DNA of 64,000 nucleotides, taken from assembly GCA_003427395.1 (NCBI GenBank), contig BFEA01000001.1, positions 5,785,719-5,849,718 on the forward strand, in the 5' to 3' direction. The notes below the pieces were generated by a model. That model was not told where the DNA came from, did not search any database, and saw only the letters and a program-made list of their open reading frames with translations. Every line of letters begins with the position of its first letter. The stretch's first letter is position 1. Below are positions 9,750 to 51,591 of the stretch, one piece after another. The translations under genes were made by a program, and so were the position numbers. Source of the DNA: Chara braunii (Eukaryota > Plantae > Charophyceae).

Positions 9750-12700
9750 ATTCAAAACCAGCTTACCATCTTTGACCTCTGCCAAAATTCCTATGGCAGC
9801 CCAGGTTTCAGCGAACGAAACCATTTCGTCGAGTATATGTTTGGCACATGTAACCCGTCTTCTCCAATCTACCTTAATGGCGAGCCGAATGTGCCTTTTT
9901 ACAGACTCCTTGATGCTCTTGTCGGAAATGAAGGGACCTTCGAAGATATTTTTTGCTTATGACTTCCCATACTACCCAAAACAGGCAAGCCCTGAGGGTT
10001 TCCGCAACATATCCCCAACCCTTGACCAAACTCAATCCCTGTAGAACGCCCCCAAATAGTGTCAAGTGGTCGTCCCATTCAAAGGTGGACCGCTTATCCA
10101 CTCCCATTAGGCTCTCCAACAGACACAGATCCTTTGCAAGAGTGGGTAATACAACCACAAGTGAGTGGTAGATTCGAAAGGGTACTTACACCGGGAGCAC
10201 AAAATTGAGATTTTCATCCCTCGTTCAGCTAGCCACACTGCTGACGGGGTGAACAACAGTGATAACAACCACAATAGCGTTGTTGCCCATGGTAATGGAA
10301 TCCCCTGCAACTGGGCCCAACATCTACGGATATCTTGGATAATCGTCTCGGCATCTGTGGTTCTGACTTGCGCCCATCTGCTGATTGCTACTGAGTCAGG
10401 AATTCTTCCCGTCCTCAATAGCTCGTGTCCACCGGCTAAATTGTAGTCTGTGAGCCAGGCTTCCTGTGAGAATTTCTTGGACCCCCTCCAAGACCAGAGC
10501 TTGGGATCCAAGCGCAGTGTGCGGACTAGGGCTCCATCTGCCCACACAATGCAGTTCTATGTATCATCTTCACTACAACTTCATGAACCCTTACCTGAAC
10601 CAGACTGCCCAGAGGTCTATTGAGTCGAACCTCAGGCTCTGAATTGCAGAGATGCAAGGCTTCCGAATTTGGGTTTCTCTCCCACGCCTGAAACTGCCTG
10701 CTGCCATCCGTGTCGTATCTTACTACTAGTTTCCAAAACACCGCTGATTACTCAGGACAGTCACCGACGTTGCTGGTAATGAACCAGGTCCCCGGAGGGG
10801 CGACTCCTTCCGGACTTAGAAGCCGTTTCCACTCCGGGGGGATGACGACCCTCAATTGGGCCGCCCTTTCATGAGTTTGTCTGATCCTTTTCAATATGCA
10901 ACTCAAAGCGTCACCTTCGATGCATTGTTTAATTATTTCATCCTAGAGATCCGCCGCCTTTGAAATCCCTCTTTCAATCCAAACCCTCCCAAAAGCATTA
11001 GGTGCAGTGCCCGCTGAGAAAGGCTTGCCCTTCTCGTTCCAGATGGTTGGGTTGTCGAAGAGGGATTGCATTAGTACCTCCGCTTTGGTGACCGGCGGGA
11101 CCCATTGCCTTGGTCCCACTTTTCTTCAGGCACTCAGGATATCATTCCAGAATTGGGACAATGTATGTCTGCATAGATATGAATCCAACATGAAGCAGGT
11201 CCATACATCCCTTGGTTGCGGTAAGTGTCATTCATTTGCTAGGATCATCTCTGCTACCAGAATCCAATGGTCGTCCGAGTCACTTGAGATTGCTTTAACC
11301 AGCCATTTAGCGAGCAGTGCCGTATTTTGATTGGCAGGATCCAACATCCCAAGTCCCCTTTCTTCCCATGGGTAGCATATAAGGTCCCAGACTACTTTTG
11401 ATATTAACCCTTCTTTTTCTTTCTCGAATGGCTTTCACAAGAATTTTGATGCGACCCTTCGTACCACTTTGATTAACTGTTTGCCTAATGCTTTTACCAT
11501 GCCGGTAAACCAGATGCGAGCACACAACGCCACGCTGGTGGCCAATGCTCGACCGAACAGCGAGAGGTGTTGAGACGGTCCCCATACGGCCATGGGTCGG
11601 ACCACCTTCTGTTGGATCAAGTCATTTTGAGACTCGATCCACCAAGCGCTACCTGCACCTCCAAGTATCTCTCTGAATTCTCACTTGTCGCTCTTTTCAT
11701 TCCCCACTCAACAACTAGGCCATAGTTTTCTGAACGCAGAGAAATTGATTTTTCCCAATTTAGAGAGGCAGCTGTATTCCAACAGACAAATCTTCAGTGC
11801 GTGCAGGGATTCGGTAGAATTTTTGGAGATGGCCATGAGATCATCCGCAAGAGTTTTCACCTGACATTCACGGTGTTGCACTTGTAGTCCCTGCATTTGT
11901 GAGTGTTGTTTGATGTTGCAAACTAGAACCTCCAACTGGATTACAAACAAGAGTGGTGCAAGCGGACAACCTTGGCGTAGTGCTCTTGTGAGGGAGAAGG
12001 AGTTTGTGAGCCAGGTGTCATGTGGGAACTTTTTGGACCCCCTCCAAGACCAGAGTTTGTGATCCAAGCTGAGTGTGTGAACCGGGGCTCCAACTGCCCG
12101 TAGAGTGCAGTTTCACGTAACATCTTCACCGCAAACTACACGAACCCTTACATGAAGCAGAGTGCCCAAAGGTGTATTGAGTCGAGCCTCAATCTCTGAT
12201 TTGCAGAGCTGCAACGCTTCCGAATCTGGATTTCTCTCCCACGCCTGGAACTTCTTGTTGCCATCCATGCCGTATGCTACTAGTTTCCAAGACACCGCTG
12301 ATCGCTCAAGACAGTCACCCGCGTTGTTGGTGATGAACCAGGTCCCCGGAGGGGCGACTCCTTCCGGACTTAGAAGGAGTTTCCACTCCGGGGGGATGAC
12401 AACCCTCAATTGGGCCGCCCCTTCCTTAGTTTGTTCGAGCCTTCTCAATATGCATCTCAAAGCGTCACCTTCGATCCATTGTCCAGTTATTTCATCACAG
12501 AGATCTGTCACCTTTAAAATCCCTCTTTTAATCCAAGCCCTCCTAAAAACATCAGGTGCAGTGCCCCCAAAGAAAGGTTTGTCGTTCTCGTTCCGGATAG
12601 CTGGGTTGTCAAAGAGGGGTTATATTAGTACCTCCTCTTTGGTGACCAACGGGACCCACTGCCTTGGTCCCACTTTTCTCCAGGCACTCACGATATCATT

Positions 12701-25675: not shown

Positions 25676-26087
25676 TTTTGGTAATCGAGGAGTCTAAAGT
25701 TGGGTGGGTAGGTGCAATCGCCTGCATATCGTTAATGTTATTGAATCCATACTTTCGTATATTATATACATAATATATTGTCACACTGTATGTGTATATC
25801 TATATAGGTATATAACATTATATGTTTATATACGTATATAACCTACATCCACGTGGGCGGCCTTGTACGCAAGAGGTTCTGAACAGGGGGAGTTGTAAGG
25901 AAGAAGATTAAAAAACGAATTCATTCTTTTTTCTTTTTTTCGCTTTTGCGCTCTCATATTCATGTGATGATATATACGTGGTGCCCACCTCAGGGTATCA
26001 GTTGTCGGGCGGTCGTTGATGCTTAACCACAGCCGGGGTTGAGGTGGATTATCACTTAGTGTATGTAATCAGTTATCAGGGGATTCT

Positions 26088-26154
26088 GCAGACTGTTGAG
26101 GGTTTAGCCTCCTCCTGATGAGTCGGTAGGTGAAACTCCGACGAAACAGTCTGT
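26088..26154 (+). ncRNA. Type III hammerhead ribozyme
   Basis: Stem III GCAGACUGU(26088-96)/ACAGUCUGU(26146-54); NUH site GUU ending 26097; stem I GAGG/CCUC; core CUGAUGA 26115-21; stem II GUCGG/CCGAC; GAAA 26143-46. Confidence 0.88.
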
Positions 26155-26233
26155 CTGTCACAGCCCCTCGTTTGTTGTCCTGTTCTCCCTCTCTGCCTAC
26201 GGTTTACCGGGCAGCTCTGTTTGACTATATAGA

Positions 26234-26458
26234 TGCGCAAGGATGGCATCAGGACTTCCTTCTTTCGATGAACGTCCTGCTGGTTTGTTGGGATGTGGAC
26301 CGCATGTCCTTTGTCAGGACTGTTTTGATGGGATGGTCCGTGCTAGTCGTTCTGCTGAATGCTGTGCTGGCGCAGCTCTCCTTGGGTATCCTTGTGAACG
26401 TCCACGTCATCCTAAGCGTGCCTGTCCTATCTGTCGGGGTGGGGGCTCCTCTTCCTGA
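26234..26458 (+). pseudogene. 5'-truncated C3HC4-like RING-finger ORF end
   Basis: C-ARMASGLPSFDERPAGLLG-CGPH-VL-CQDC...A-CPIC-R then stop; the first Cys is lost at a (TA)n junction. Confidence 0.65.
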
Positions 26459-28310
26459 CTGGTCAATAGAGTCAAGCAGGTCAGGAGCAACACTAATTGT
26501 TGTAGGACAGAAAGTTTTCGACACTACCAACAGATACGGAGTTGAAGAAAGAAGAAAGAAAATATTGAAAAAACTAAAAAAAAAAAAAAAAAAGAAATTG
26601 CTGAAGGAAAGAAAAAAGAAAAAAAGAAAAAAAAGAAAGAAAAAAAGAAGGAAAGAAAAACTATGTTGCACTTTGTTGTGACAGTGGCAATTGGTTTATC
26701 TGTGGGATGTGTCATTTGCTTTGTTTGACTGGTAGGCCTTCCTCTTCCCTTGTCCTTTTTTTTTGACTGGATCCCTTTCTCTTTCTCTTGCCTCTGTGAG
26801 GTTTGGTTTCCTCCTCCTTTTCTTTACCTCTTTTTGCCTTTTGGCTGCGTGCAAGTGGCTCCTTGTGACACACGGGGATGGGGGCAGCCAGCGCTCAATC
26901 TGTCATCCACGTGGCTGGCTTTGTACGTAAGAGGCGATGAACAGGCAGAGCTTCCTTCTTTCCTTTTTTGTTTTGTCTTTTTCCGCCTTTGCGCTCCGAT
27001 TCACAGTGTGACAATATAATATGTATGCGACAATGTATATGTAGGAGTCGGTGAAACTCCGACGAAACAGTTTGTCACAGCCTCTCGTTTGTTGTCCCTT
27101 CTCCCTCTCTGCCTACGGTTTACCGGGCAGCTCTGTTTGACTATATGTATCAACCTACATCCACGTGGGCGGCCGTGTACGCAAGAGGTTTTGAACAGGG
27201 GGAGTTATAACTAAGGAGATAAAAAATGAATTGATTTTTTCTTGTTTTTCTATTGTTTTTACGCTCTGATATCTTTGTGACGATATATATCGTCGAACAC
27301 AGCTGCCCGGTAAACCGTAGGCAAAGAGGGAGAAGAAGACAACATATTTGCAAGTGTGTCGATATGACACACGGGAGTGGGGGCAGCCGCCGCTCACCCT
27401 GCATCCACGTGGGCGGCCTTGTACGCAAGATGTTCTGAACAGGGGGAGTTGTAAGGAAGAAGATAAAAAAACGAATTCATTTTTTTTTATTCTTTTATTT
27501 TTCTTTTTTTCTTTTTTCGCTTTTGCGCTCTGATATTCATGTGACGATATATATATATCCGGTTGATGATATATGATATATATAGCCGCCGCTCAACCTA
27601 TATCCACGTGGGTGGCCTTGTACGCAAGAGGTTCTGAACAGGGGAAGTTGTAAGGAAGAAGATAAAAAAATGAATTTATTTTTTTCTTCTTCTTTTCGCT
27701 TTTGTGCTCTGATAACTTTGTGACTGTATATCTGATATCTATGTGACGATATATATACTCCTTCTGTGCCTACGGGTGCAAACGGTTTACCGGGCAGCTT
27801 TGTTTGACGCTCCATATATATAGTCAAACAGAGCTGCCCGGTAAACCGTAGGCAGAGAGGGAGAAGAGGACAACAAACGAGGGGCTATACATTAGTATTT
27901 TTTTGACGCTCCATTATTTACATAAGTATTTTTTTACAATGCCGCATCTTCCCCTACGTCTGTGAGATTTTGCTTTTCTTTCGGTTATGTTTGAATTTAA
28001 CCGTGTGTGACATTCTAGGTGGAATGTTTTGTACGTAGTCAGTCCGTAAATTGCGGTTAAAAATATGATTGAAATAATAATGCAAGTATAATTCATAAAG
28101 GAGCTGGGCTACCAGCCGGGCCGCCCGGGTCCCGGGTGGCCAGCCCGTGCAAGGACCAGGGAAGGTCGCAGCCAAAAAGAAAAAAAAAAAATTCCAAAAA
28201 ATCCGGGAAAAAATTATGTTATGCTGAAAAATAAAATGAACAACGTTTGCCTCAGGGTCACATCGAAATTCTTCACCAAATTTAGAATAAAAAATAAAAT
28301 TTAAAAATAA

Positions 28311-28750
28311 TTATTTCGGTCGGTGATGCAAACGCTGGACTCGTTGGGAAGGGTGCAGGTCACTCCGCCGGGCCGTATGGGAAGAGGAAGAAGAACGATT
28401 GTTTCGGGCAGTGATACCAAGAATAGGACGGAGTGTGGGAGGAGATTTATGGGCCTTAAGAACACAATAGAGATACGGCAATGTGTCAGCATGAGGATAA
28501 TTCCAATGATTGTTCCAAACTGCATGGCTATTCAGAATGTCAGCCACTGATTCAGCAGGCCGAGAATACGTAGGACTGTCAAGGTGGCTTGACAGTTTGA
28601 ATCTGTACCAATTTTTACAGCAAATAGCCAAATTATGTGATGTTTTGTCCACAGGAACAATCGCAAAGGATTCTTGAAGCTGACGCAGGGCCGTATGCGC
28701 GTGCCGCAAAGAGCGAGGCTGTCGCAATGGTGACGCGGTAGTCACATCTG
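28311..28750 (-). pseudogene. Penelope-like reverse transcriptase fragment (pre-RT and fingers)
   Basis: IVPVDKTSHNLAICCKNWY...L...TY...LPYLYCVLKAHKSPPTLRPI matches the PLE DK / LY..K.HK...RPI motifs. Confidence 0.8.
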
Positions 28751-28758
28751 GCTTTCCA

Positions 28759-29306
28759 GTGGTGACCGATTCGGATCTGCGGGCAGACCTACCAAATTCT
28801 TGTGGTTTGACAACCACAAATGTCTGCCTACAGGCTTCTCAGCGTCAATGTTATAGTGCATCCCAATTTCTTACGATTGCGTATCAGCTTGACGCTGTTG
28901 AAAATCAGTTGTTGCTTGACCATAATAGTCCACCTGCAGAAGGTAGTAACTATACTACCTCAGGAGGCTTTACTGTAAATGTCTTACAGTATCAGTTGTT
29001 GCTTGACCATAATAGTCCACCTGCAGAAGGTAGTAACTATACTACCTCAGGAGGCTTTACTGTAAATGTCTTACAGTTAGCGTTTCACGGTCGCCACCTT
29101 CTTATGCATCATACGACGCCAGGCGATGACCTCAATAACGATCCTCATATTTTTGCCTGTATTTTACATAGACCCGGGCATTATATGGCACTCATTCGTG
29201 CAGCTGCCCAGTGGGAACTGTGGGATGGTGGGACGATGAGTCAGGTCATTTTCGACGTGAATGAATTTTTGCGAGCGTTGTCGAATCATACTTTATTCTG
29301 GATTAT
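28759..29306 (+). CDS. Josephin (ataxin-3-like) cysteine protease domain; frame runs into an assembly gap
   Basis: SCGLTTTNVCLQ...IAYQLDAVE, SNYTTSGGFTVNVLQLAF and GHYMALIRAAAQWELWDG parallel ataxin-3 LCAQHCLNNLLQ...IAHQLDEEE, GNMDDSGFFSIQVISNAL and EHWFTVRKLGKQWFNLNS. Cys 28801, His 29179, Asp 29224. Confidence 0.78.
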
Positions 29307-30934
29307 NNNNNNNNNNNNNNNNNNNNNNNNNNNNNNNNNNNNNNNNNNNNNNNNNNNNNNNNNNNNNNNNNNNNNNNNNNNNNNNNNNNNNNNNNNNNNN
29401 NNNNNNNNNNNNNNNNNNNNNNNNNNNNNNNNNNNNNNNNNNNNNNNNNNNNNNNNNNNNNNNNNNNNNNNNNNNNNNNNNNNNNNNNNNNNNNNNNNNN
29501 NNNNNNNNNNNNNNNNNNNNNNNNNNNNNNNNNNNNNNNNNNNNNNNNNNNNNNNNNNNNNNNNNNNNNNNNNNNNNNNNNNNNNNNNNNNNNNNNNNNN
29601 NNNNNNNNNNNNNNNNNNNNNNNNNNNNNNNNNNNNNNNNNNNNNNNNNNNNNNNNNNNNNNNNNNNNNNNNNNNNNNNNNNNNNNNNNNNNNNNNNNNN
29701 NNNNNNNNNNNNNNNNNNNNNNNNNNNNNNNNNNNNNNNNNNNNNNNNNNNCGCTCAACCTGTCATCCACGTGGCTGGCCTTGTACGTAAGAGGTTATGA
29801 ACAGGTGGAGCTTTCCTTACCTCTTCCCCTTCCCCTTTTTTCTTTTCTTTTTTTCTTTTCCCTTTTTCGCTTCTGCGCTCTGATTCACAATGTGACAATA
29901 TATATATTTTTTGGCCCGGCCGGGCAAGTGACCCCCGGCCACTCTGGTAGCCTAGTAAAGGAGTAAATAAATCGTGGAAATCTGTCACGGAGTCAAAGGA
30001 GAACGATGGTTGTACCGCTCGAGATTCCAATTGGAGGCGACCATCAAAATATGTATAAATTAATCAAGTTCGTTTTGTGGTTTTGTTTTTCTGGGTGGAC
30101 TCCCGCCACTGGAAGGTGAATGAGTTTGTGGCAAGTCAGAGTCGGATTCACCCTTTTTTTGTATATCTCTTTTTTTTTAAAAATAAATAGAATTAACATC
30201 CCTTTTTAATTAGTCGCCTTCCTTACATGCTGCTCGGTGATAAATAAATAGAATTAACATCCCTTTTTAATTAGTCGCCTTCCTTACATGCTGCTCGGTG
30301 ATTGGCACGAAGAAGGCGGCACTCTGGCAATGGCCATTCTGTGAAAGTGATATCCATGAGAAGGGGAAAAAAAAGAATTATTAATTAAACAACTTAATCT
30401 GGAAATATAATTTAACTCAAAAAGAAGAAAATCGATTTGACGACTGAACAATCCGGTCCTTGCCCGCCACCCCCTCCCAGCCTTCATCGCGGCTTGCATC
30501 CCTGATATCAATTATCAATGTGCTAAATGCCAGGTAATGACAGAGGAAGAACTACTTGGGCTGGTTGTAATGTGCACCGGCCCTTCCCCCTCTCCCCCCG
30601 CGCCCCCCCCCCCCTCTTTTGTTTTCCCCCTTTTTGAAACGTTTCCTACCAGCTTCTTCGCCGTTAATGCATGGGCGGGAAATTCTCTTCAACGCCATGT
30701 GGAACAGGATATTTTGAGTCTTTTCTGTTTTTGTTCTTTTTTTACATGGTGTAGTAAATGAGTGAGGAGTGAATCGCCCACCCATCGTCATCAACTCCTG
30801 TTCTTCCCCTCCCTCCCCCCGCCCCCCCCCCCCCCCCCCCCCTGTTTTCCTCCCTCAATCATGGTCCGAACGCATGTCATGTCGTTGGTCTTTGTTTCAT
30901 GTGACAGTTACTCTTGTGCCTACTATTCAGCCCC

Positions 30935-31110
30935 GTCACGGGCCTCTGGTTGATGACCGTTTGTGTACCAGTCATCTGAGCCTGGTCACGGCCCTCTGGT
31001 TGATGACCGTTCCACTGCCATCTGTGTACCAGTCATCTGAGCCTGGTCACGGCCCTCTGGTTGATGACCGTTCCACTGCCATCTGTGTACCGGTCATCTG
31101 AGCCTGGTTC
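30935..31110. repeat. ~61-bp tandem repeat, three copies
   Basis: gtcacggccctctggttgatgaccgtt...gtcatctgagcctg repeated. Confidence 0.85.
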
Positions 31111-31565
31111 AATCAGGGTGCGAACACATGTCATGTCCTTGATCTGTGTTTCATGAAGTTGCATGTGTGTACCTGCCGACCATTCAGTCCCAGGATGGGC
31201 CTCTGGTTCATGACTGTCCCATCTGTATATAGAGGTGATGAACAGGTGGGGCTTTCCTTCTTTTCCTTTTCTTGTTTTGTCTTTTTCCGCCTTTGCGCTC
31301 CGATTCACAGTGTGACAATATATATGATCAGCCTCGTGATCAGTAGGTAGGTAGGCGAAACTCGGACGAAACAGTCTGTCACAGCCCCTCGTTTGGTATC
31401 CTATTCTCCCTCTCTGCCTACGGTTTACCGGAGGGCAGTTCTGTTTGACGATGTAGACCTACGTACTCATCAGGTCAGGAGGCTATATGTTATGATGTAT
31501 GTGTATTTTATTTTATCTGTTATTTTTAGTTGAGTGGAACCATCCCTCATGGTGCGTGCAGGTTA

Positions 31566-31920
31566 CTATTACTCATGGCCAACGGGCCTAGAACTCAGTT
31601 GGCACACCCATGCATGAGCTGTTGAAATACAGACCTTCGTTCGAATCCAGATGGAAGTAGATGCATGGAATTCGTGAATTATTATTACGCAGGAGAATGC
31701 ATTCAATTCTCTACTGACCCCTTTCGGAATGTGCAAAGCCCAGTACGAGCGTATATGAGAATCCACCTGGTCATAAGGCACAGTCAGGTACGCCAGAATG
31801 CACCAGGTTGTTGCATTGTGACAGGTCATGAGCAGGACCTCACCCCTGTGCGCAAGGACGACACTCATAAATTGAAAAAAATGGTCCCCCCAAAAAACTA
31901 ACAAGGAAAGAAAAAGTGAA
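31566..31920 (+). mobile_element. Retroposon ending in a U6 snRNA 3' half plus an A-rich tail
   Basis: 31843-31887 cccctgtgcgcaaggacgacactcataaattgaaaaaaatggtcc matches the U6 3' region; degenerate TSD ggtgcgtgcaggtta (31551-65) / ggtgcggtccaggtca (31921-36). Confidence 0.65.
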
Positions 31921-43125: not shown

Positions 43126-43147
43126 GATTGTGCTTCAAGCCTTCAAC

Positions 43148-43296
43148 TCCTTTTTGGGACATCTGTCAAAATTGGAACGATATGGAGAAGATTAGCATGA
43201 CCCCTGAGCAAGGATACACAGAGAGAAGATTAGCGTCCCCTGCGCAAGGATGACACTCATAAATCGGAAAATGGTACCCACTTAAAAAAAATAAAA
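43148..43296 (+). pseudogene. U6: U6 snRNA retropseudogene with internal duplication
   Basis: gggacatctgtcaaaattggaacgatatggagaagattagcatgacccctgagcaaggat, then again gagaagattagcgtcccctgcgcaaggatgacactcataaatcggaaaatggt; A tail; ~24-bp imperfect TSD at 43127-50 and 43297-320. Confidence 0.9.
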
Positions 43297-44100
43297 ATTG
43301 TGCTTGAAGCCGTGAACTCCAAAAGCCATCTGTGTCTTCCCTTTCTCTGCGCGTCCTTGCATTCTCTCTCCTAACCCTGTCTGGCTTACTCTGTCATCTT
43401 TTTCACAGCGTGCAAGTGGGCTGTCATGACAGATGGGGTACGGGCGCCTCATGCCAAACCACACTGGCATGGGGAGCCTTGCCCCTGAGAGGCACAGTCA
43501 ACAGGGAGAGCTGAAAGAAATAAAGACGAGAAACCGCAAAAGAGTTAAAAGGAAGAAAGACGACAAGAACTGCTCAGAGAATGGCAAAATAAATGGGTTC
43601 AGCGCCTCTCTTGCCATCTGCTCTTTTCTTCATTTGCTTCACTCTGAATCCAGAATGCTTGGTACATAAATTGAGCAAGAAAGGGAAAGCGGTAAAGGGC
43701 CGACCAAGAAATCCCAAAGAACGGTGGAAGGATTGAGAGTGAGACTAAAGACTAGAGTGTTTGGGAAATCCCATGACAGTGTGACCTAAATGAGTGGAAT
43801 GGGGGAACGGTACCATTGGAGAACTGTATACTGTTTCTCATGTGTATCATATCAGGTGCATGAAGGTGTGGCCTTTGGAATTATAGCTGTGGAAACAAGT
43901 GGACTTGTGACTGTTTCTCTGATCAAATTGGGGTTTGGTTCTGGGGCTCATTGTGTGGTGGATAAGGTTGCAGCTAGGTACAATCAGTGATGTTTTTTTC
44001 AGAGTTGTGGTGCTTACAACATATCGTACTGTATCTGACATATCAACTGAAAGCATGAATGTAATGCATATTTTGATGTCTCTCTCTTTTCTATTTGCAG

Positions 44101-45905: not shown

Positions 45906-47540
45906 CTAACTGTCTGGAACGTGTCCTCTCCAAATGAAGGATAAATTATTATTCTTTATGATTGCAACTGCTCCTTGCCCCAAGATATTCTGATTAAACC
46001 GTTTCATTATCTCTTCCGCTTGTCCCGGATGGAGTGGTACTCGTTTCCTTACTACTTTCCATTGTGCTCTAAAATCTGTTTCAACCAACGTGAGAAATAT
46101 CTCCCTTGCTTCCTGTATGTGCATTGGCCTATCTTCAAAAGTAACTTGGCACCTGCGTTTCCAGATAGTCCAGAGACTATACTGTCGCACTAATTTAAAA
46201 AGATGTTTCTCAAAGTTCTGCCATAGNTTCGGGATGTTGAGTCCCAACATAAGGGAGATTTTAGACTCAGGAAAAGAAGACCTTGTAATCTGTCCCCATA
46301 TGTTCCTCACTTCCCCCCAAAACTTACCTGCTTCCTCACATGCTATGAGGCAATGCAGCATTGTTTCCGGATCCCCCGATCTACATACCCGGCATGCAGC
46401 ACTGTCCGCGCTCCTCTGACCCAAACTTCTACGCTCATCCAACCAAGCATTGACCGGAAGTGNCACGTGAGCTATCAACCACTGCATACTTCTAACCAAC
46501 CCCAACCGTATAGCTGTAATACTTGACCAAGGTATTTTCGTTAACTGATTACGTGGAATGTCTACTCTCNTTTCCCATCTCTTTGTCAATAAAGGCGCGA
46601 GCGTATGAGCCCGTCTTCTCAATCNATACCCAGAACTAGTAGTATAATGTAAGATGTTAATTCTTCTTTCTACACCTNTACCTCTATTCTTGAGCTTCCA
46701 AGCCCATTCTACCGGATCCACTTCCAGATCTTCAATTGATACTGATGGACTATAAATTGTAAAATCCTCTGTCTCCACTACCCTCACCTTCCTCAGATAT
46801 TGTTTAAGAATAACTAACTGAACTTTAGAAGTNATGTCCAGAAGAGAAGTTGTATTGGATGGATGGGTAATTTCATACTTATCTGCATGTAGCCAATCNT
46901 GCTTTGAAGAATCTTGATTCCATATCCTGAAGGCTTCCTTAGGTTCACTATCATAGTTCCATGTGGCCCAGTCCCCCTGCTGCCATTTTATACCCTCCTG
47001 TAGGACTTGTTGCCACCTTTGTGGTATTGCCCCTAAGACAATCCCCCGATTATCATCTAATTTATGACATCCTTTTAATTGAGTCCTTAATTCTCCCACT
47101 GTTTTCCATCTCCCTTCCCTGTCTTCCCAGATATGCTTTACTTGCCAAACCCCATGCTCTACCCATCTTCCCCACTTTGCGTCTTTTATNGACAGTATCA
47201 GCGGNTNCCCTTGTGCATCCCTAATACTCTGATTACCAAACAAAGGTTGTCTAAGAATTTCTTCCCTCGTGCCTGGCTCCTTAACTTTTGCTGGGAAAAT
47301 GTCCTTCCATAGTCTCAATAGCTGTACCCAATACGATGTTTTCGCTGCTTCATTGTCAGCCCCCTGAATACCTCGTACATGTCCTCCCACCTTAGGCCAA
47401 TTACTACACATTAACCAAAACAAGCCTGACATATTCTGGGGCGTTTTGAATTTAGCCATTTGTCGTATTCTGTGCAACACTATAGAGGTCCATGGTAGCT
47501 TGTGCTGTGTTAAGAGTCTAACCACCCACTTCGTTTGCAA
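45906..47540 (-). CDS. C-terminal part of an L1-like ORF2 with zinc-binding motif (5'-truncated, frame still open)
   Basis: EEILRQPLFGN, as in the 9-19 kb family; CRVCRSGDPETMLHCLIAC; LWTIWKRRC; poly(T) tail at ~45308-45332. Confidence 0.88.
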   Translation of the reverse strand: MQTKWVVRLLTQHKLPWTSIVLHRIRQMAKFKTPQNMSGLFWLMCSNWPKVGGHVRGIQGADNEAAKTSYWVQLLRLWKDIFPAKVKEPGTREEILRQPLFGNQSIRDAQGXPLILXIKDAKWGRWVEHGVWQVKHIWEDREGRWKTVGELRTQLKGCHKLDDNRGIVLGAIPQRWQQVLQEGIKWQQGDWATWNYDSEPKEAFRIWNQDSSKXDWLHADKYEITHPSNTTSLLDXTSKVQLVILKQYLRKVRVVETEDFTIYSPSVSIEDLEVDPVEWAWKLKNRGXGVERRINILHYTTSSGYXLRRRAHTLAPLLTKRWEXRVDIPRNQLTKIPWSSITAIRLGLVRSMQWLIAHVXLPVNAWLDERRSLGQRSADSAACRVCRSGDPETMLHCLIACEEAGKFWGEVRNIWGQITRSSFPESKISLMLGLNIPXLWQNFEKHLFKLVRQYSLWTIWKRRCQVTFEDRPMHIQEAREIFLTLVETDFRAQWKVVRKRVPLHPGQAEEIMKRFNQNILGQGAVAIIKNNNLSFIWRGHVPDS

Positions 47541-50166: not shown

Positions 50167-51591
50167 GCTAGGTCGGACATACCCTGTCCGGTCCGACGTC
50201 CGACCAGACGTCCGGTCGGACATCCCGGACGGTCAGGGGGGTCCCGGACGTCCGGCCCGGTAACCTAGCTAAAAATGGGATTAGAGCAGATGGTTTGCAG
50301 CTTAACAGGAGGGCAGAGGGTGCATCTCCTAGTGCTAGATGCGGCGAAACAAGGATAGGATTGTTGATCGTTCAAGCAAACATGTGCTGGTAGCTTAATG
50401 TACTAGTTGTGGGAGGCATTTGACATGTTATTAAACTCTCGGAGGGCATCCTTGTCTAGGCGCGTTTCGATAATGACGTTCGTTGGCATGATCTTCAAGC
50501 CGGGCTGCTCACTTGTATGCTTTCATTGATGATGTTCTTTCATGGGGGCAATTATATCAGATGGGTCGTGTGCATATTTAGGTATGCGACTACGGGTCTG
50601 CTCTGATGGCTCGCTTTGTATGAGTGTCTTTGATAAGGCGGCGGCCCGGGATTTCCGTGTCGTTTGTTAGCCGAGTGCAATCTCCAACATCCCTTCCCAT
50701 CACAACCGACATGTCTCTGACCTTTGGGAGCTGTGGGACAATGGCACCATGGTCCATGCCACGACTAATGCTACGGGTTTCTTACGTAACGATGCTGTTT
50801 TCTTGCCACGGCAAACCGTCCGCACACTCTTTTATGCCGAAGATAATTGTATTGCAAATGGATGACAACGTATCAAAAATCCTGCAACCTTGTCCATTGC
50901 ACAGCTACAGACAGTGTTACACTTGGCTGCAGCCATCATCGACTCTTTCACAACCACTATAATGACTTGGTTTCTGCATTCACGTGGGTGGAGAGGACTG
51001 ACCCTCCTCTCCTGACAGGCACCCTCTGCATCTGGACACACTGTCCATTTTGCGGCCATGGGAGTTATACTGAATGCACAGTCTTTTGTGGTGCCTGTGT
51101 TCCTTCATGTTAGCGTGCAATTGGCATGTCATGTGTTGGGTGTGTTTGGTGAGCATGGTTAATGCTAGCTGTCATGGCAATTGTTTTCCAGGTCCTCGTC
51201 CGTCTCATCCTTGACCTCTCTGTCATCAAGGACAGACTGATTCCTGAGCCTTCTCTTATCCTTTCCTATGCGTTCATCTTCATTCCGCACTCCTTACTTT
51301 CCCCGTCTTTCCCTTGGTCTTCCTTTGCTTTGTCTTCTTTGCATCTTTTCTCTCTGTTTATCCCCTCCCCCTTTTCTCGGCCTCTTTTTCACATTGTACA
51401 ACTGTGCAGTTATGGCATACGAGGAATGTGGGCAGCTTGTGTTCAACTTAATCAACATGGCAAGCCTTGTATGCGAGAGGCCAAGTAAAGGGGGAGGTAA
51501 AAGGAGCAACAGTAAGGAAAGAAACAAAGAACAAAGAGCTGCATAGGAAGTGGCAAAAGCGGTTTCATTGTGGTCTTCATGTTTCGAGAAG

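Follow-up and report, generated by a model that had tools for sequence, protein, structure and literature searches.

Coding fragments at the locus

A 6-kb region within a 64,000-nt stretch of the Chara braunii genome (the window, to which all positions refer unless another locus is named) carries fragments of a Penelope-like retroelement (PLE) of the Chlamys type, and a further site of the same kind lies at 50.5-51.5 kb. The coding fragments comprise a piece of reverse transcriptase (RT) on the minus strand, and a Josephin-like cysteine-protease domain and a RING-like Cys/His module on the plus strand; they are interspersed with copies of two short non-coding modules, A and H, that adjoin (TA)n. 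We read the locus, with a probability of nearly nine in ten, as a cluster of dead Chlamys-type PLE insertions in the Chara genome, seeded at (TA)n and for the most part 5'-truncated. The coding fragments and the assembly gap that interrupts them are the following.

26236-26458, plus strand: 'copy 1', a 5'-truncated copy that retains the last RING-like module, of beta type, together with the stop codon (open reading frame, ORF, 26243-26458), with the motifs CGPH at 26294-26305, CQDC at 26312-26323 and CPIC at 26423-26434
28401-28721, minus strand: Chlamys-type PLE RT fragment, from the DK motif to RT1/2, inside ORF 28311-28817 (BLASTP and tblastn)
28745-29306, plus strand: Josephin-like cysteine-protease domain of the 5'-truncated 'copy 2' (Pfam; ORF 28759-29306), which enters the assembly gap
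28904-28990 and 28991-29077, plus strand: perfect in-frame 87-bp tandem duplication (2 x 29 amino acids, aa; 100% identity), absent in the related ORF P0001
29307-29751: assembly gap of 445 Ns
50516-51520, plus strand: third, decayed copy, of a sister family (blastn identity of 73-77% to C. braunii locus L003 10614-11352; tblastn)
50516-50703, plus strand: RT5-RT7 of the third copy (tblastn), followed by an internal deletion and then the C-terminal end of Josephin
50874-51092, plus strand: RING-like module of the third copy, alpha type
51101-51238, plus strand: RING-like module of the third copy, beta type
51393-51510, plus strand: module A core of the third copy

An initial annotation, covering 26088-29905 and thus not the third copy, had recognized a PLE-type RT fragment on the minus strand and a Josephin domain on the plus strand, and both identifications hold. 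Residues 38-139 of ORF 28311-28817 (window 28401-28706) form the matching part of the RT fragment, and tblastn extends the match to 28721. The fragment is 61% identical to P0011/L004 (BLASTP, E 2e-43) and 61% identical to P0014 (BLASTP, E 3e-37), with 59-65% identity to the C. braunii locus L002, and it retains the DK motif 'VPVDKT' (28641-28658, minus strand) and the RT1 motif 'LPYLY..KAHK..LRPI' (28422-28481, minus strand).

The Josephin ORF 28759-29306 scores 37.4 bits against Pfam Josephin (PF02099), for which the cut-off is 26, and a profile built from it and its relatives matches ataxin-3 Josephin structures with E ~1e-5. The columns of the catalytic Cys and His align with 'LCAQH' and 'EHWF' of ataxin-3, the corresponding codons being 28801-28803 (Cys) and 29179-29181 (His), and the domain is a predicted deubiquitinase. 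Its identity to P0001, a metagenome ORF recovered in a search of protein-cluster representatives with the Josephin ORF, is 72% over the matched stretches and 59% across the duplication (BLASTP, E 3e-74); the remaining matches of that search are all Chara braunii proteins. Since the window Josephin is only 33-45% identical to two C. braunii copies, the window element may belong to a sister family. The 87-bp duplication either arose recently or is an artefact of the assembly, and the repeated 29 aa possibly disrupt this Josephin copy. Matches of the duplicated, beta-strand-like 'NYTTSGGFTVNVL' segment (28904-29077) to giant bacterial SwmB repeat proteins (P0002-P0006) were spurious multi-stretch alignments and were discarded. 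Two further tandem duplications, with a 61-bp unit, occur at 30181-30302 and 30957-31078 (100% and 97% identical); these may be assembly artefacts or the result of recent slippage.

At its left edge the gap cuts the Josephin end 'HTLFWI', which in P0001 stands five residues ahead of the first RING-like Cys pair, and at its right edge the sequence resumes within the P1 loop of module A, with the 5' strand of P1 lost. The right side of the gap is non-coding, and the 343-aa 'ORF' that runs through the Ns is therefore a meaningless artefact. Judged by the first copy of the window and by L003, the gap would be expected to hold two RING-like modules, the untranslated region (UTR) and the 5' strand of P1, i.e., ~550-850 bp against 445 Ns, the latter being an estimated length. 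Order and strand across the gap plausibly fit one 5'-truncated copy.

Domain order of the parent element

The order of domains in the parent element is drawn from related loci and ORFs rather than from the window alone. P0046, a metagenome ORF of 1282 aa and a cluster-mate of matches to RT-core searches, joins GIY-YIG, CxC, DK, RT and Josephin in one ORF (Pfam scores of 20.3 bits for GIY-YIG and 38.6 bits for Josephin). It is 46% identical over 1024 aa to the ORF of locus L004 (745-3648, 967 aa), which has an N-terminal GIY-YIG at 22.6 bits, right at the Pfam cut-off, together with a CxC motif, a DK motif and an RT core; the CxC motif reads 'NTCACR' in L004 and 'DCHCR' in P0046. RT core and Josephin also share uninterrupted ORFs in P0012, P0013 and P0014, metagenome proteins found with the L002 RT core as query (Pfam Josephin at 40.3 bits in P0012 and 33.1 bits in P0013). 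Within C. braunii locus L002 (8927-13315), a single frame of 1462 codons, free of frameshifts and interrupted by just three internal stops, runs from the DK motif through RT core, linker, Josephin and four RING-like modules to a terminal stop. Locus L003, also from C. braunii, presents on its plus strand and within 1.5 kb an H end, (TA)n, Josephin, two consecutive RING-like modules, module A and (TA)n.

In P0001, Josephin leads directly into a Cys/His module, and beyond an in-frame stop at its locus (L001) a second module begins, with 79% DNA identity between L001 996-1068 and window 26267-26339. Because Josephin is followed there by a first module and then by a second that resembles the RING copy, P0001 bridges the Josephin copy and the RING copy of the window. 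The stop between RING-like modules 1 and 2 is an in-frame TGA (L001 978-983), after which the same frame resumes; L002 reads through at the corresponding position.

The parent element would comprise a single long ORF followed by a 3' UTR, module A, a terminal box and (TA)n, and the ORF would encode, in this order, a GIY-YIG endonuclease, the CxC motif, a telomerase-like RT, a low-complexity linker, Josephin and tandem RING-like modules. The source order put forward initially (RT, Josephin, RING, UTR, pseudoknot) is borne out by L002, L003 and P0046 as far as the UTR and module A, but not in its pseudoknot, and the co-linearity looked for with an N-terminal GIY-YIG was found, P0046 carrying GIY-YIG to Josephin in one ORF and L002 carrying RT, Josephin and RING in one frame. 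The relatives support an RT of the N-terminal-endonuclease Naiad/Chlamys type; its assignment to the PLEs draws on domain order, motifs and the published description of such elements.

A different origin, in which Josephin and RING come from a Dualen/RandI long interspersed nuclear element (LINE) or from a host gene and lie beside a PLE fragment by chance, is very improbable. The ORF of Dualen/RandI LINEs of green algae likewise includes a Josephin-like protease, according to Kojima & Fujiwara 2005 as cited in PMC8557442, and LINE remnants are present in the window as well. Those LINEs, however, differ in having a LINE-type RT, apurinic/apyrimidinic (AP) and restriction-enzyme-like (REL) endonucleases and RNase H, and Pfam detected no AP-endonuclease, RNase H or REL-endonuclease in any element ORF scanned. 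Moreover, P0046, P0012, P0013 and P0014 join Josephin to the same RT family in uninterrupted ORFs, P0046 additionally with an N-terminal GIY-YIG, and L002 holds RT, Josephin and RING-like modules in one frame. As related ORFs and loci join the three parts, rather than distributing them over unrelated families, an origin from Dualen or a host gene is not needed. The main value of assigning the pieces to a PLE is one of annotation: the 6-kb stretch and the 50.5-51.5 kb site become Chlamys-type PLE fragments, and the Josephin and RING pieces are to be taken neither for a host deubiquitinase gene nor for a host E3 ubiquitin ligase gene.

The Cys/His modules were aligned as a set of nine from four loci, in which C17, H20, C23, C50, P56, C60, C63 and G66 are invariant. 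Alpha-type repeats ('LC..HY') and beta-type repeats ('C..C') alternate; the latter match C3HC4 spacing, and alpha-type modules have His or Asp as ligand 6. The module of copy 1 is 38% identical at the amino-acid level to the P0001 module (E 2e-7) and 46% identical to the beta module of L003. AlphaFold predicts a beta-beta-alpha layout for the RING-like module, with a predicted local distance difference test score (pLDDT) of 71.

Several observations weigh against reading the locus as a cluster of Chlamys-type PLEs with this domain content. No intact copy exists anywhere in the window, and tblastn with related elements found no endonuclease (EN) or CxC sequence in it. Pfam has no match for the RT ORF 28311-28817 or for the L002 ORFs, and sequence and profile searches of the PDB with the RT were likewise without a match. 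ORF 26243-26458 falls below the Pfam cut-offs (zf-RING_5 at 19.3 bits against 27.9), and it is the only one of the nine aligned modules with a Pfam match, itself below the cut-off. This module also lacks the first Cys pair (ligands 1 and 2), present in its relatives and in every other module of the alignment. The top match of the RING-like module in a PDB profile search was the arenavirus Z RING, at a non-significant E of 0.18, and RING domains make up nine of the ten best Foldseek matches, yet at E >= 4 throughout. The likeness to Chlamys-1_cBra, the published C. braunii element discussed below, was drawn from the published description of that element. Finally, the target here is (TA)n, whereas PMC8557442 gives (CA)n and (C)n as usual for Chlamys elements and (TA)n for Naiads.

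The modules are named RING-like because both profile and fold evidence lie below threshold. What had been described as a RING-finger ORF end thus stands as a Cys/His module with RING-like spacing, but with sub-threshold scores and a missing first Cys pair, and the E3-ligase module claimed along with it went further than Cys/His spacing and non-significant fold matches allow; E3 activity is put forward here as a hypothesis.

The inverted RT piece is an orphan fragment of ~320 bp: no RT core, EN or CxC continues it on either side, and no module A was found on the minus strand. The initial annotation had the RT inverted during integration, so that RT piece and Josephin copy would stem from one event, through a second priming or a template switch similar to the twin priming of L1. 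The geometry permits this, and we regard it as a tentative possibility of somewhat less than even odds. The inverted segment has its 5'-most point at ~28721, next to the place where the direct Josephin copy has its own 5' end (~28745), and at its far end it borders A/T-rich DNA; in the element, the RT segment originates upstream of the Josephin segment. A plain insertion by target-primed reverse transcription would keep its own 3' end, whereas the RT fragment is without RT core and without minus-strand module A, and PLEs are known for copies inverted at the 5' end (PMC8557442). However, the inverted and the direct segment would have to leave out ~2.2 kb of the element between them, the usual inverted PLE copy extends to the 3' end and the RT piece does not, and the case is a single one, with no such junction in L001, L003 or the third window copy.

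We give roughly an even chance to the RT piece being either the remnant of an independent, older minus-strand copy cut by deletions and insertions, or the product of an assembly mis-join. Nested fragments in both orientations are densely stacked in the region, the 445-N gap is 500 bp away, perfect 87-bp and 61-bp tandem duplications are nearby, and PLE structures often break short-read assemblies (Craig et al., PMC8557442). On the other hand, a nested insertion would leave a minus-strand continuation (CxC or EN) on the right-hand side of the Josephin/module A copy, and none was found there. A later rearrangement or mis-join is thus at least as likely as inversion at integration.

Between an H copy on the minus strand and the RT fragment lies an AT-rich segment (28180-28299) with 75% identity to L002 15889-16006; it represents a further repeat family common to the window and C. 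braunii L002.

The 3'-terminal modules A and H

Module A consists of a ~105-nt core, a pyrimidine tract and the terminal box '..GCGCTC.GAT....TGTGAC(R)ATATA'. Its core motif has six matches in the window, all on the plus strand, with 0 expected by chance; one half copy and two diverged cores, the second being that of the third copy (51393-51510), come in addition. Every copy terminates in '..GTGAC(R)ATATA' adjoining (TA)n, and the association of module A with (TA)n reported initially is upheld by the six matches and their fixed ends. The copies, with the UTR that precedes the first complete one, are as follows.

26459-26846, plus strand: 3' UTR of copy 1, mainly A-rich and then T-rich low-complexity sequence (the L003 equivalent is only ~50 nt)
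26847-27030, plus strand: complete module A, with P1 at 26887-26892/26914-26919 and a hairpin at 26920-26931; its 3' part is composed of the pyrimidine tract, the terminal box '..GCGCTCCGATTCACAGTGTGACAATATA' and then TA-rich sequence
29752-29906, plus strand: module A variant a2, from the P1 loop on, 90% identical to 26892-26953 over the core, with the P1 3' strand at 29774-29779, the hairpin at 29780-29791, and terminal box plus (TA)n at 29893-29906
25829-25976, plus strand: module A variant a1, 5'-truncated inside the P1 loop
27142-27290, 27345-27556 and 27584-27757, plus strand: other a1 copies
31231-31325, plus strand: 3' half of module A with an H copy (31332-31457) directly after it (84% identity to 26930-27144, 224 nt)
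43406-43522, plus strand: isolated diverged module A core, in which P1 is retained via compensatory changes

Fixed 3' ends beside TA repeats, combined with ragged 5' ends, are common to A and H, a pattern typical of the 3' termini of retroelements whose copying starts at the 3' end. Conservation of module A extends across families with only ~35% identity between their proteins. RNAalifold and pair counting identify a 6-bp stem, P1. Both bases have changed in three of its six pairs, and 95% of cells are paired, compared with at most 52% when the partner is slid. The second hairpin, CUUG-NNNN-YRAG (26920-26931), is retained only by wobble changes and is rivalled by an equally compatible long-range pairing with an upstream GUGCAAG. 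A column-wise scan of the P1 loop against downstream sequence yielded no pseudoknot helix better than P1, and the pseudoknot of the initial annotation reduces to this one 6-bp stem with covariation support. The shortest copies are truncated beyond function, as they are without the 5' strand of P1. With a stem upheld by compensatory changes, module A is a candidate binding site of the RT. A match to U6 small nuclear RNA (snRNA) at 43147-43242 (Rfam, 54 bits, above the gathering score) lies ~160 bp upstream of the isolated diverged core, and blastn aligns 31849-31904 with 43241-43297, which takes in the 3' end of the U6 match and the bases immediately beyond it, at 80% identity over 59 nt.

Module H ends in '..CTGCCTACGGTTTACCGGGCAG..GTTTGAC' followed by TA and occurs six times, in both orientations.

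26088-26235, plus strand: module H1, located immediately upstream of the RING ORF, ending in GTTTGAC plus TA and containing a complete hammerhead core
26088-26096/26146-26154, plus strand: helix III of H1
26095-26097, plus strand: putative cleavage-site triplet GUU
26098-26102/26110-26114, plus strand: helix I
26115-26121, plus strand: CUGAUGA
26122-26126/26138-26142, plus strand: helix II
26143-26145, plus strand: GAA
27043-27150, plus strand: module H copy, 5'-truncated inside helix II
27283-27344 (minus strand), 27777-27808 (plus strand), 27813-27898 (minus strand) and 31332-31457 (plus strand): other H pieces

The hammerhead pattern was found once (26088-26154) against 0.01 expected. Its helices have 9, 5 and 5 pairs, all 19 of them standard, in what reads as type III topology, with a fold energy of -22 kcal/mol. 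Rfam, searched at gathering and E-value thresholds, reported no hammerhead, HDV-like (hepatitis delta virus-like) or other ribozyme in modules A and H; a short-range Rfam scan gave Hammerhead_1 at 16.7 bits against a cut-off of 34, in a type I reading without helix I. H1 is the only complete hammerhead copy, the others being cut inside the motif or decayed, and when metagenomes were scanned for the H core, a single contig (L006) came up, in which the H copies are truncated and the hammerhead is nowhere complete. In this contig (BFBZ01009962.1, 250-410), a module A end is followed by an inverted H head-to-head with a direct H, joined inside GAAAC, an inverted stacking of the same kind as in the window. 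The H copies of the window are 84-97% identical among themselves and fall within this range, at 90-94% identity, against C. braunii L003 9917-10003; as every relative with a species name is moreover from C. braunii, the host is most probably Chara.

The initial annotation overlooked 26088-26235, upstream of the RING ORF, as a separate module with a hammerhead and a 3' end of its own. We treat H as separate, and not as a 5' UTR of the RING copy, because it has the fixed GTTTGAC plus TA end, is followed by unrelated sequence and is bordered by TA on both sides in L003. It is unlikely that H is instead a 5' UTR or pseudo-LTR part (LTR, long terminal repeat) of the module A element, with A-(TA)-H as a tandem pseudo-LTR junction. 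A is indeed followed by H three times (25829-26235, 26892-27150 and 31231-31457), and at two places the stretch from A to H aligns as a single block (84% over 224 nt). Yet what comes after the GTTTGAC plus TA of H is unrelated from place to place (the RING ORF, module A, Josephin in L003, other DNA), the 5' ends of H are ragged, as is characteristic of a 3' terminus, and TA repeats flank H on both sides in L003; the shared (TA)n target explains the adjacency of A and H. We assign H, as a 3'-end module, to a different element type, which is probably Chlamys-2-like or non-autonomous. Its terminal box resembles that of A, which suggests that the same or a related enzyme serves both.

Two other candidates in the region were rejected. 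Rfam E-value matches to 'miRNA' families (mir-2831, mir-8, mir-299) at 27776-27855 reflect only the hairpin formed by tail-to-tail H copies, plus and minus, across a TA run, and a terminal-inverted-repeat pair at ~28100/~29930 was dropped, as it has only a 9-mer in common and was not found by the repeat search.

Relation to known elements and a proposed mechanism

Craig, Yushenova, Rodriguez & Arkhipova 2021 (PMC8557442) described Chlamys-clade PLEs of C. braunii with ORFs of ~1800 aa, in one of which, Chlamys-1_cBra, a C-terminal extension carries a Josephin-like motif and an 'unknown C/H motif'. The architecture, which the initial annotation did not know from any PLE, is therefore real but not new: the design of RT, Josephin and Cys/His motif in Chara was already published in 2021. 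The window family and Chlamys-1_cBra have in common an N-terminal GIY-YIG, CxC and an RT with DK (GIY-YIG and CxC being taken here from relatives), a long ORF with a Josephin-like domain and then a conserved Cys/His motif (L002, P0001, L003), and the Chara host, high copy number, 5' truncation, and tandem and inverted pile-ups. Modest additions are made here. The C/H motif left 'unknown' in the paper reads as tandem RING-like modules of alternating alpha and beta type with RING-like spacing, the 3' UTR contains a conserved element with a supported stem, the Chara elements end in (TA)n, and a similar terminal box is found in a second 3'-end module, which contains a hammerhead core.

The same paper describes a second C. 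braunii type, Chlamys-2_cBra, with a canonical 3' hammerhead and a gag-like upstream ORF. Module H resembles it in being 3'-terminal, in having a complete hammerhead core ~80 nt from the end and in its host lineage, but differs in that H has no coding sequence joined to it in the loci compared, the hammerhead falls below the Rfam threshold and a single copy is complete. H could equally be a short non-autonomous element. In non-autonomous PLE derivatives and retrozymes (bioRxiv 10.64898/2026.07.22.740005; MRC1 in Chlamydomonas, PMC8557442), short units are likewise arranged head to tail, 3' ends are common with autonomous PLEs, and some units have hammerheads; unlike retrozymes, H has one hammerhead per unit and gives no sign of tandem monomers or circular RNA.

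Naiad PLEs of invertebrates share with the window family the N-terminal GIY-YIG, CxC, a preference for (TA)n, pseudo-LTRs and inverted copies, but they occur in metazoans, possess a DKA motif and an EN with a CCHH motif, and are without a Josephin/RING-like extension. Among host proteins, ataxin-3, ATXN3L and JOSD1/2 are the counterparts of the Josephin domain, which has the Pfam Josephin match, the ataxin-3 profile match, and the catalytic Cys and His in place; it differs from ataxin-3 in that Asp replaces the Asn of the triad's third position, ubiquitin-interacting motifs are absent and the domain sits in a transposon polyprotein. The RING-like modules share the spacing C-x3/4-C-x9-C-x2-H-x2-C-x2-C ... 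C-x2-C and the predicted beta-beta-alpha fold with C3HC4 RINGs (RNF4, RNF24, RNF165, arenavirus Z), from which an additional conserved 'C-x-H-P-x-H-P' segment and the His or Asp at ligand 6 of the alpha type set them apart.

In the single PLE that has been studied in vitro, the endonuclease cuts AT-rich DNA, the RT starts inside a stem-loop and the hammerhead is dispensable (PMC11167929). By analogy, the endonuclease of the window family would nick AT-rich or (TA)n DNA, and the RT may bind module A and begin target-primed reverse transcription at the terminal box, incomplete copying then yielding the stacked 5'-truncated copies. The Josephin and RING-like cassette could act on host ubiquitin conjugates, e.g., protecting the element ribonucleoprotein or altering target chromatin. 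If active, the cassette would make this a rare retroelement carrying both ubiquitin-removing and ubiquitin-adding modules. It is a more speculative thought, and in our view a doubtful one, that the 'C/H motif' is a tandem RING-type E3 pair which forms a ubiquitin-editing cassette with Josephin, and that H elements are non-autonomous riders on the same box and (TA)n; if true, these riders would be the green-lineage counterpart of the animal relation between retrozymes and PLEs.

Elsewhere, the window is eukaryotic and repeat-rich, with many assembly gaps. It contains LINE-type remnants at 45906-47540 and 10107-10547, both on the minus strand and with weak zf-RVT matches; the former is 61% identical to C. 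braunii CBR_g23228, its sole database match.

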